Of a stretch of DNA of 64,000 nucleotides, positions 4,302 through 56,915 are shown in pieces (position 1 is the stretch's first letter; every line of letters begins with the position of its first letter). Under the pieces are notes generated by a model that was given only the letters and a program-made list of their open reading frames with translations, was not told the DNA's origin and ran no database searches. The stretch comes from Dimorphilus gyrociliatus (taxonomy: Eukaryota > Animalia > Annelida): the NCBI GenBank assembly GCA_904063045.1, contig CAJFCJ010000017.1, positions 930,001 to 994,000 on the forward strand, in the 5' to 3' direction. The translations under genes and the position numbers were made by a program.

Positions 4302-4384
4302 ACCAGGATGGCCGAGTGGTTAAGGCGTTGGACTTAAGATCCAATGGACAAATGTCCGCGTGGGTTCGAACCCCACTCCTGGTA
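4302..4384 (+). tRNA. tRNA-Leu, anticodon TAA
   Basis: 83 nt ACCAGGATGGCCGAGTGGTTAAGGCGTTGGACTTAAGATCCAA..GGGTTCGAACCCCACTCCTGGTA with A and B boxes and a long variable arm. Confidence 0.98.
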
Positions 4385-37302: not shown

Positions 37303-38127
37303 ATGGCTTTGCAGAAGTTGGCAAACAATCGTTTGCAGAATGCTGTGACAAATGAGGTAAGCTTTTATAATATATTGAGTTTTCGTCTTGGGTCTTTTTT
37401 AAAGAAGAGGTTCACTTATTAGGTCGTCGAAATGCAATCGCTTTGGACAAATAGAAATGTCATCATTTACTTTATGAGAAGGTTTGGATGACCTTTGTGC
37501 AGGCTCTATCTGCGGCAGGTTAGCATTATCTGTTTTTAGAGTTAACTCTAGGATGGATATGATACTTTACAGATCAATTTATTTAGCTTTCAGAAGCCAC
37601 AGATCTTCTACGGCAGCATAATACAGCAATTGCTGTTATCAGCGTTCTTGATAATGAAACCAGCTATAAAACCTTTATGGATGAGGAAGATAATTCCAAT
37701 AAAGGTGATCAAGTTAATTTTTGTTTTAAAATACAAAAAATGAACTTTTCTTTAATTGCTTACAGAGATTTATATTGCTGATGAAAAGTTATATAAAGAT
37801 ATTGGCTTCACTTCTCTAACTAAATGCCAGTATTGCTGTAACGCTTGTACATGCTGTTGCAGAGGAATAATATGCAATCAAGTTTGTAAAACCTTTTCTG
37901 CCGGAGTTGGAGGTGATTTGAGAGGTAACATACTCAGAAATGGGGGTATGCTGGTAATCAAAGACGGAGAAATTGTTTTAAGCCTCATACAATTAGGACC
38001 CGAAGATCATCCTGAAGTTTCAGAAGTTTTAAAATCTTTAGGAATTGAAGAAAAGATATCTCCAAAAATCGTTTCGAAGCAACCTAAATTGGTTTGCAAT
38101 GATGAATTTTGTCAGATACGAAAGTAA
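37303..38127 (+). CDS. SELENOU: Peroxiredoxin-like PRXL2/SelU-family selenoprotein (U41-x-x-C44), 209 aa with TGA recoded
   Basis: Exons 37303-37356, 37423-37518, 37587-37704, 37766-38127. In-frame TGA 37489-37491 lies in YFMRRFG-U-PLCR; family motifs continue after it (GDLRGNILRNGGMLVI, DHPEVSEVLKSLG); SECIS in the 3'UTR. Confidence 0.9.
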
Positions 38128-38187
38128 TCTTCAAAAGTCACAAAACAATTTCAATTAAAATAAAATAGCTTGTTTGAAAACACCAGT

Positions 38188-38232
38188 ATGACGCAAAGTA
38201 GAAAAACCTTAAACGGATCTACTTTTGCTGAC
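38188..38232 (+). promoter_or_regulatory. Eukaryotic SECIS element (type II core)
   Basis: ATGAC-GCAAAGTAGA-AAAA-CC-TTAAAC-GG-A-TCTACTTTTGC-TGAC: UGAN/NGAN quartet, 10-bp helix II with one bulge, unpaired AA 11 nt after ATGA, apical mini-helix. Helix I is less clear. Confidence 0.88.
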
Positions 38233-38624
38233 GATAATATTACATTAAGGTTGTTTGTCAACAAGTTATTTCATTATTAATTGAAATTGTATCTAATGCG
38301 TTGTAATGTTTATCTGTTGCATGTATCTTTAATTAGTCTATTTGCAAAAATTAAATACGAAAGTAAGGTAAAAAAGGAGTTGAAAGGCTTTATGTAAAAT
38401 AGAATAAAAGAGAAATTACGACTTAATATAATTTACTTCCTTGCATATATTTCTATGCAATAAATATTTCTAACGAATAAATTAATGAAACATAAAACAG
38501 CATGTATTAGATATTTTATTATTAATACTCAGGGACACATTAACAAACATAAGCATTTACTTTAATCTGATTATGCAAGTTAATTATTGTTATCCTATAT
38601 TAAGAGCCAAAATATTTTCTGCAA

Positions 38625-39851
38625 TTAGAATTTATTGAGTGCCTGAATTTCATCGTCTTGAATCATAAACAATGTACTTTCTGAGCCCCAATAGACAAAA
38701 GGTCTATCCCATTCACTACTACCTTCTTTATTGAACAGAAAATTGCCTGTGTTAACATCCCAAACTTTTATCGAACCGTCTACACCCGAACTGGCTAAAA
38801 ATCTATCGTTAAAAGCCATATTGACAACTCTGGATTTGTTAAATGAGGATCCATAAGTAAGAAGAGGTTTTTTCAAATTCCTCAAATCAGTTCTGAAAAT
38901 ATTGCCCATATAATCGGCTGACAGAAGCATGTTGTTTTGGCAATATAAGTTTGTTATGACACTAGCATGTCCACCGTGTTTAATAAGACCAGTAAATTTT
39001 ATTCCAGAATTTCTTATATCGTGCATATAAATTTTACCCGGCCTGGACCCATTAAAAATTAAATTGCTGCTATCTCCCTGACCAAAGCAACAAGATAAAA
39101 CGTCAGAATAGTCCGTTTGAAGGAACCACGATTTTCTATTCAATGGGTCTAATATTTCAGCCTTTCCCTGCATACCATAACATGTTTTCTTCAAAATAGA
39201 ACTCCATGCCACACACCAAACATTTTTGCAAGAGAGTAGGTATACCTGTTTTTGTCCTTCAGCAGTTACGTATACCAATCTGTATTTTCTCCCTGAATTG
39301 TACAGCTCAAAAGGGCTTTGAATTATTATAAAGTCAGTATTATGTGCTAAACAGAAACAATGGGTTCTAAAATCTGAGAAAGATTCCCGAAGGTTTAAAT
39401 CCAAGTAATCGTTTCTTTTGGCAGAATAAATATTACTTATTCCGCATGGCGTTACCGCTTCTATTAAGATGTTCTCGTCAGACCAGTCTAATCTTTCTAC
39501 AGTGTGACTCTCTGGAAATGGTCTCAATTCCGTAGTTACCCTGGAGTTTTTCACTAAATTCGTTATTAATCTGCCTGTAAAGTTTAACTGCTTTGAGAAC
39601 TGCCTTTGTTGGAGAATTTGAACTATATTAGAATTCGTTGAATGTAGTTTTTCTGAAATTTTCCTTGAGTTTTCACTAGCTCGAATTGAATCCTTGGTCA
39701 AAGAACTCCCTGGATTGTCATGAGATGAGAGGATTTTAAAGTAACGCTTCTTTACTTTATCATAGAAAAAACCAGGCAAATCAGATTCTTCCTCTGCTGA
39801 TTTCGCTGGTTTCTTTGGTGATTTTTTACGATTACGTCGATATCGTGGCAT
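38625..39851 (-). CDS. DCAF4: DCAF4/WDR21-like WD40 CRL4 substrate receptor, intronless
   Basis: DLPGFFYDKVKKRYFKI N-terminal signature; WD40 repeats with IYMHDIRN, FRTDLRN and IKVWDV. Confidence 0.85.
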   Translation of the reverse strand: MPRYRRNRKKSPKKPAKSAEEESDLPGFFYDKVKKRYFKILSSHDNPGSSLTKDSIRASENSRKISEKLHSTNSNIVQILQQRQFSKQLNFTGRLITNLVKNSRVTTELRPFPESHTVERLDWSDENILIEAVTPCGISNIYSAKRNDYLDLNLRESFSDFRTHCFCLAHNTDFIIIQSPFELYNSGRKYRLVYVTAEGQKQVYLLSCKNVWCVAWSSILKKTCYGMQGKAEILDPLNRKSWFLQTDYSDVLSCCFGQGDSSNLIFNGSRPGKIYMHDIRNSGIKFTGLIKHGGHASVITNLYCQNNMLLSADYMGNIFRTDLRNLKKPLLTYGSSFNKSRVVNMAFNDRFLASSGVDGSIKVWDVNTGNFLFNKEGSSEWDRPFVYWGSESTLFMIQDDEIQALNKF

Positions 39852-56148: not shown

Positions 56149-56915
56149 TTATTGGGTTTCCATGATACTTTCTTCAGTATGCTTTCCCTTCTCCAAAGCC
56201 GCCTTGCGAGACTTCTTTCTATCTAAAATCTTTTTACGGTCCTTGTCCAATTTCAACTTAACAATTACGACCTGGAGACACAAAAAGTTCATATAAGTAT
56301 TCTAGTGTTAAGATTAAAGCGGTTTGATCTTACTTTGCTTGGGTGGATGCCAACGTTGACGGTAGCTCCGTTAGCTTTTTCACGTTGGATTCTTTCAATG
56401 TGAAGGACGAACTTTTTACGGTAGCACTGAACTACTTTGCCAATCTGTTGTCCCTTGTAATGACCGCGGACGACCTGAAAGAGGGAACTGTGTTTAGAAT
56501 TTGAAAATATAACTATGAAATTAAGAAGTCTTAATGGATATTCAGTAAAACCAATAATCATAAGATTCATACTGGGGCGGTAATATCTCATCATTTATAA
56601 AACACAATAGGAGAGAGGGTGCGTTAGAGTTTACATCCCTTACACTTCTACTGTTACATGAAGATTCAAGGCGATAATACGAAAATTTTCGGTCATTATC
56701 AGTTCCTTGCATGGTCTTCAAGATAGCGTGACTTTCAGTAAATTTACCTGTACTTCATCCTCCTTGCGAACTGGCATACTTCTAACACCGTATTTAGTGC
56801 GAAGATCTTTTGAGAGAGGAGCACTCATTATTTTTCTTCTGATGTGAGAGGGCGCATTAAAGTGGCGTTTCCTGTTCTTCCTCCTGGAGGAAGACACCTG
56901 CTTGTTGAATTTCAT
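56149..56915 (-). CDS. RPL26: 60S ribosomal protein L26
   Basis: [33 protein letters not shown]|[14 protein letters not shown]|[13 protein letters not shown]. Confidence 0.98.
56540..56598 (-). ncRNA. SNORD31: Intronic box C/D snoRNA U31/SNORD31-type (snR67-like) in RPL26 intron 56475-56747
   Basis: C box ATGATGA (56594-56588), guide TACCGCCCCAGT, D' ATGA, C' ATGATTA, D CTGA (56545-56542). The guide is a 12-nt perfect complement of LSU P-loop ACUGGGGCGGUA; D box 67 nt from the 3' splice site. Confidence 0.9.

Follow-up and report, generated by a model that had tools for sequence, protein, structure and literature searches.

A probable selenocysteine-encoding PRXL2B (SelU3) gene in Dimorphilus gyrociliatus and a public gene model that lacks its active-site exon

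The window, the whole 64,000-nt stretch of Dimorphilus gyrociliatus DNA analyzed here, carries a four-exon gene on its forward strand (Table 1). The coding sequence (CDS) is 630 nt long, comprising 209 codons and the TAA stop, and contains a single internal stop, a TGA. The three introns (66, 68, and 61 nt) all have GT-AG borders. Direct reading and translation place the lone TGA at the first Cys of the family CxxC, where the initial annotation had put it. As that annotation had also described, the frame runs on through two more exons in phase, and the mechanical list of open reading frames (ORFs) displays only the last exon, as a 123-aa ORF (37756-38127).

This last-exon ORF shares 100% identity with the public D. 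gyrociliatus protein DgyrCDS10967 (P0001), which is encoded at positions 967303-968127 of CAJFCJ010000017.1 (assembly GCA_904063045.1); these 825 nt correspond to window positions 37303-38127. The N-terminus encoded by exon 1 is also found in the public protein as well as in the orthologs described below. In the public model of 177 aa, exon 1 is joined straight to exon 3 (...NAVTNE|LSEATD...), and exactly the residues of exon 2 are missing. Because exon 2 is 96 nt long, skipping it is neutral for the reading frame. Standard annotation had been expected to truncate the gene or to call it a pseudogene; instead, the public model skips this exon.

The gene is arranged tail-to-tail with an intronless gene for a WD40 protein of 408 aa, which matches the DCAF4 beta-propeller family (PF23761) with 35.1 bits. 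This synteny is kept in one of the two relatives introduced below (relative B, L001 5086-6312) and probably in the other (relative C, ERR14224706 contig). Elsewhere, the window includes its sole tRNA, a tRNA-Leu(TAA) whose variable arm is long (65 bits in Rfam; also called by ARAGORN), and a SNORD31-type box C/D snoRNA (Rfam, 41.8 bits against a gathering score of 40).

Table 1. Positions of the gene, its predicted recoding elements, its paralog, and neighboring features. Numbers refer to the window unless another sequence is named.
Feature	Position	Strand	Description
Exon 1	37303-37356	+	start ATG at 37303; 18 codons; reads MALQKLANNRLQNAVTNE
Exon 2	37423-37518	+	32 codons, 96 nt; reads VVEMQSLWTNRNVIIYFMRRFG*PLCRLYLRQ; predicted active site RRFG-U-PLC-R; absent from public model
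In-frame TGA	37489-37491	+	predicted selenocysteine codon, residue 41; context RRFG-TGA-PLCR
Exon 3	37587-37704	+	ends in phase 1
Exon 4	37766-38127	+	stop TAA at 38125-38127; GGDLRG...GG core and C-terminal C-N-D-E-F-C motif
Cysteine string	37825-37887	+	CQYCCNACTCCCRGIICNQVC; 9 Cys in 21 residues, residues 110-130
SECIS core	38188-38231	+	AUGA(C), 10-bp helix II with one bulged U, unpaired AAAA, 2-bp mini-stem, (U)GA
Extended SECIS	38159-38275	+	predicted long helix I closing an asymmetric internal loop; constrained folding, quartet held unpaired
DgyrCDS12822 (paralog) locus	L007 3001-3963 = CAJFCJ010000021.1 about 679644-680606		skipped TGA exon at L007 3131-3226; SECIS at L007 3920-3963
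WD40 (DCAF4-like) gene	38625-39851	-	intronless
tRNA-Leu(TAA)	4302-4384	+	long variable arm
SNORD31-type snoRNA	56537-56601	-	box C/D

The product had been assigned to the thioredoxin-fold SelU/PRXL2 family. Profile, sequence, and structure comparisons all bear this out, and the best matches point to PRXL2B (SelU3) as the probable subfamily. Database queries were made with pieces of the gene, with the public protein, and with proteins from databases; the read-through D. gyrociliatus protein, with X at the UGA, served in local alignment. The Pfam family AhpC-TSA_2 (PF13911, PRXL2/SelU; cut-off 27 bits) recognizes a full-length ortholog with 30.1 bits and the public D. gyrociliatus protein at a borderline 27.8 bits; the last exon alone gives a weak match (E 0.021). 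An exhaustive phmmer search returned only 30 relatives at E<=0.001, and those that carry names are arthropod 'prostamide/prostaglandin F synthase' and fish PRXL2B-like proteins. Compared with the human prostamide/PGF synthase (PGFS; PDB 9US9/9USA), the full-length ortholog aligns over residues 14-187 with an E value of 4e-22. An AlphaFold2 model of the relative C ortholog, which is 71% identical to the D. gyrociliatus protein, has a pLDDT of 84.6 and a pTM of 0.80. Foldseek places 9USA/9US9 as the best matches of this model (TM 0.83-0.88, target-normalized), followed by peroxiredoxins and Bcp/AhpC. All named and all solved best matches are PRXL2B, and the gene product has its C-terminal C-x4-C motif in common with them.

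In human PGFS, Cys44 and Cys47 form the catalytic CXXC, and Arg40 and Arg41 are strictly conserved (2026 structure paper, PMC12938796). When the ortholog is aligned with 9US9, the UGA position falls opposite Cys44 of the human sequence RRFGCVVCR. Arg40 and Arg41 have their counterparts in the two Arg of RRFG, and a counterpart of Pro167 is present too. In a MAFFT alignment, all full-length homologs of the Cys form have the first Cys of RR[FW]GCxxCR in the UGA column (X). That the family occurs in both Sec and Cys forms, as previously stated, agrees with the Cys of these homologs, including human Cys44, and with the Sec-containing SelU3 of invertebrates (PMC3473315).

Orthologs were found in two relatives. 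Relative B was reached via a 76%-identical database protein (P0002) and is represented by a 28.5-kb genomic contig (Logan run SRR23372228), in which the four exons, the 630-nt CDS, the DCAF4-like neighbor gene, and the position of the TGA codon are all as in D. gyrociliatus. For relative C, transcriptome assemblies of three sequencing runs provided spliced mRNA contigs. All three species have the TGA as codon 41, and the same codon is also found in a paralog (see below). Logan run ERR14224706 holds a 4.6-kb contig with the last exon of the relative C gene. This run is cited in a coral microbiome study (PMC13083261), which raises the possibility that relative C is a small coral-dwelling annelid.

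In another database entry (P0005), a full-length read-through of an ortholog, the Sec position is occupied by Trp, for which a TGG allele or RNA editing was considered. Both are rejected, because the contig DNA (L005, Logan SRR31837514) reads TGA; the Trp thus reflects gene prediction with a different genetic code, evidently one where TGA is sense. Read-through database entries such as this one can mimic a Sec-to-Trp substitution.

Selection on the coding sequence was assessed by Nei-Gojobori proportions (pS and pN) in the three pairwise comparisons among the three orthologs. Over the whole CDS, pS is 0.64-0.86, that is, synonymous sites are saturated, and pN is 0.12-0.17, with constraint on both sides of the TGA. 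The longest invariant run of the CDS in the three species is a 19-nt segment centered on the TGA, TTTGGATGACCTTTGTGCA (CDS nt 115-133, window positions 37483-37501). A recoding-stimulating hairpin about 16 nt past the UGA was also considered. It would occupy the stretch 16-50 nt past the UGA in the mRNA, across the exon 2-3 junction, with one compensatory pair. It is predicted in the three orthologs but has z-scores of only -0.3 to -1.0 and is missing from the paralog, and so it is unsupported.

The best non-orthologous match (P0006) is DgyrCDS12822 from the same worm, on contig CAJFCJ010000021.1, with 35% identity. Between its annotated exons 1 and 3, the DNA has an unannotated exon that reads VVQLEDLWKERNVVIYFLRRFG-TGA-SLCRLYIKQ, and a predicted SECIS is found 69 nt past its stop. 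The two genes share the exon-intron layout around the active site, the TGA codon (RRFG-U-SLC-R in DgyrCDS12822), a predicted type-2 SECIS, and the exon-skip error. They differ in the strength of the PF13911 match (54.9 bits for DgyrCDS12822 vs. 27.8 bits) and in the lid region, where DgyrCDS12822 has just two Cys. With its skipped TGA exon and SECIS, DgyrCDS12822 indicates that the D. gyrociliatus genome contains a pair of Sec-type PRXL2B genes, each concealed by the same type of artefact.

A SECIS core with the canonical quartet, helix II, and apical AA had been noted 60 nt after the stop codon. All features of this pattern are there: the AUGA begins exactly 60 nt past the TAA, followed by helix II and the unpaired AAAA (Table 1). 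The long-helix-I architecture is also predicted for relatives B and C and for the paralog, 60-80 nt after their stops. A simple SECIS-pattern scan gave five matches in 128 kb (both strands of the window), two of them with ATGA. Searching Rfam with the whole window at the gathering threshold, or with 601 nt at E<=10, returned no SECIS match. SECIS_1 surfaced solely in searches with 101 nt, which were run with laxer filters; there it ranked first among 4227 families for each of the four elements, with 17.1 (D. gyrociliatus), 21.5, 17.3, and 25.2 bits (paralog), all below the gathering score of 35.

A leave-one-out covariance model, built solely from the SECIS elements of relatives B and C and of the paralog, picks out positions 38176-38243 at 34.7 bits (E 1.4e-4). 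This is the sole significant match in 64 kb, the next one scoring 15 bits. Together with the pattern scan, this shows that the SECIS pattern at 38188 is more than chance. In the model-fitted alignment of the four sequences, 6 of 11 helix II pairs are changed on both sides, 88.6% of cells are paired, none of 500 shuffles attained these values, and every slid register is worse. Note that this covariation serves as supporting evidence only, since there are four sequences and their alignment was fitted to the model. In a plain MAFFT alignment of two sequences, three of ten helix pairs are compensatory. The unconstrained minimum-free-energy fold of the region has no extra stability compared with shuffles (z -0.69). 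Fold energy by itself therefore says nothing for a SECIS, and the evidence lies in the pattern, the comparative data, and the covariance model.

Judged from its sequence, the locus is very probably a genuine Sec-encoding PRXL2B (SelU3) gene, in which the UGA at residue 41 specifies Sec in a U-P-L-C redox center. The initial annotation had proposed a Sec-containing UxxC redox enzyme, and this reading gains support from the alignment of the TGA with the family Cys, the TGA shared by three species and the paralog, the two-sided constraint, and the SECIS-like element in four genes.

It is highly improbable that the public model is right after all, with exon 2 lying outside the mature mRNA or being a rare cassette, and with the protein being the 177-residue DgyrCDS10967 without the redox motif. 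The deposited annotation does join exons 1 and 3, the skip of 96 nt does keep the frame, and a search of the protein collection for transcript-derived D. gyrociliatus proteins found none, hence none contradicting the model. However, exon 2 is the best conserved exon, with 84% nucleotide identity to relative B vs. 45-48% for the introns, and its frame is under purifying selection. In relative C, exon 2 with the in-frame TGA stands between exons 1 and 3 in all three mRNA contigs. Given its conservation, the constraint, and the invariant run at the TGA, neither a skipped exon nor a pseudogene would be expected to look like this. Without exon 2, moreover, a core strand and the family-defining RRFG-UxxC active site would be lost. 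In the annotation of the paralog DgyrCDS12822, the TGA exon is passed over in the same way, a pattern that suggests a gene predictor steering clear of in-frame stops. DgyrCDS10967 is very probably an artefact, in which the in-frame stop was dodged by leaving out exon 2.

Termination is weak at a UGA with C as the next nucleotide, a context that occurs in D. gyrociliatus and both orthologs. A near-cognate tRNA for Trp, Cys, or Arg could then decode the UGA in place of Sec-tRNA, and the 3'UTR hairpin would have another role. This is highly improbable, as the UGA coincides with the family's catalytic Cys, a position with documented Sec/Cys exchange, and the hairpin has an AUGA...AA...GA core for which SECIS_1 is the best Rfam match in four genes. 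That the gene is a pseudogene, or that the UGA terminates translation to give a 40-residue peptide, would suit the early in-frame stop and the sub-threshold Rfam SECIS scores but is scarcely credible, given that the 168 codons past the TGA (42-209) have pN of 0.12-0.17 vs. pS of 0.70-0.86 and are free of other stops and of frameshifts in three species, that the TGA is kept though synonymous sites are saturated, and that the SECIS-like element keeps its structure but not its helix sequence.

If the UGA encodes Sec, the type-2 SECIS in the 3'UTR would recruit SBP2, eEFSec, and Sec-tRNA, and the UGA, about 570 nt upstream of the SECIS in the mRNA, would be decoded as Sec rather than as a stop. 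The paralog, a second gene with UGA and predicted SECIS, lends indirect support to the view that this genome may encode the Sec machinery (tRNA-Sec, SBP2, eEFSec, PSTK, SepSecS, and SPS2). By homology with PGFS, the selenolate would attack a peroxide or endoperoxide substrate. A selenenylsulfide would then form with Cys44 of the UxxC motif and be recycled by a thioredoxin-type reductant, in analogy to the cycle proposed for the Cys44/Cys47 pair of human PGFS (PMC12938796).

The encoded protein has one further peculiarity, the cysteine string in exon 4. Seven of its nine Cys are invariant among the three orthologs. The string is missing from the paralog and from all other homologs compared. It aligns with Tyr108-Asp124 of human PGFS, a flexible region that passes near the active site (PMC12938796). 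In the ortholog AlphaFold2 model, the string forms two helices of lower confidence (pLDDT 68-82). Tentatively, this gene may be a specialized paralog, in which the lid loop by the Sec active site was swapped for a conserved string of 8-9 Cys, perhaps serving as a palmitoylated anchor, a metal or Fe-S site, or a thiol relay for the selenenylsulfide; we regard this as possible but rather doubtful.

Sec-containing forms of this family are known. More than ten Sec-containing SelU genes were reported by Jiang et al. in 2012 from six invertebrates, the annelid Capitella teleta among them, with SelU3 being the prostamide/PGF synthase lineage and its Sec form the norm among non-deuterostome invertebrates (PMC3473315). 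Finding a Sec-type PRXL2B in an annelid thus comes as no surprise. The D. gyrociliatus gene resembles the Sec-SelU3 genes of Amphimedon, Trichoplax, Nematostella, Lottia, and Capitella teleta (PMC3473315) in probable subfamily, in UxxC replacing CxxC, in an AUGA_AA-type SECIS (here predicted) in the 3'UTR, and in habitual mis-annotation. It differs from them in belonging to a miniaturized genome and in being a divergent copy (35% identity to the second copy) with a nine-Cys string. With human PRXL2B/FAM213B (9US9, 9USA; PMC12938796) it shares the modeled thioredoxin-like fold, RRFG-[C/U]xxC-R, the two Arg, the Pro in the Pro167 loop, and a size near 200 aa. However, identity is only about 25-27%, human Cys44 corresponds to UGA here, and Tyr108-Asp124 is replaced by the Cys string with a 4-residue insertion. 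The fish and bird SelU1 (PRXL2A-type) likewise belong to the AhpC-TSA_2 superfamily and have Sec at a Cys position of CxxC (PMC3473315) but represent another subfamily, as judged from the PRXL2B identity of all named and solved best matches. A literature search found no papers linking D. gyrociliatus with selenoproteins.

The main value of these results is the correction of the annotation. The public proteome holds this enzyme and its paralog without the exon for the catalytic center, and comparative or functional studies using these models would therefore treat both proteins as inactive or odd. With the two genes, the predicted selenoproteome of D. gyrociliatus gains two entries. The genome of D. 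gyrociliatus is among the smallest known in annelids, and two Sec-type genes would mean that genome compaction did not remove the use of selenocysteine. New biochemistry could come from a single feature, the cysteine string by the predicted Sec active site. If its proposed role is true, the cysteine-string variant would be a new PRXL2 architecture, so far confined to D. gyrociliatus and two relatives.
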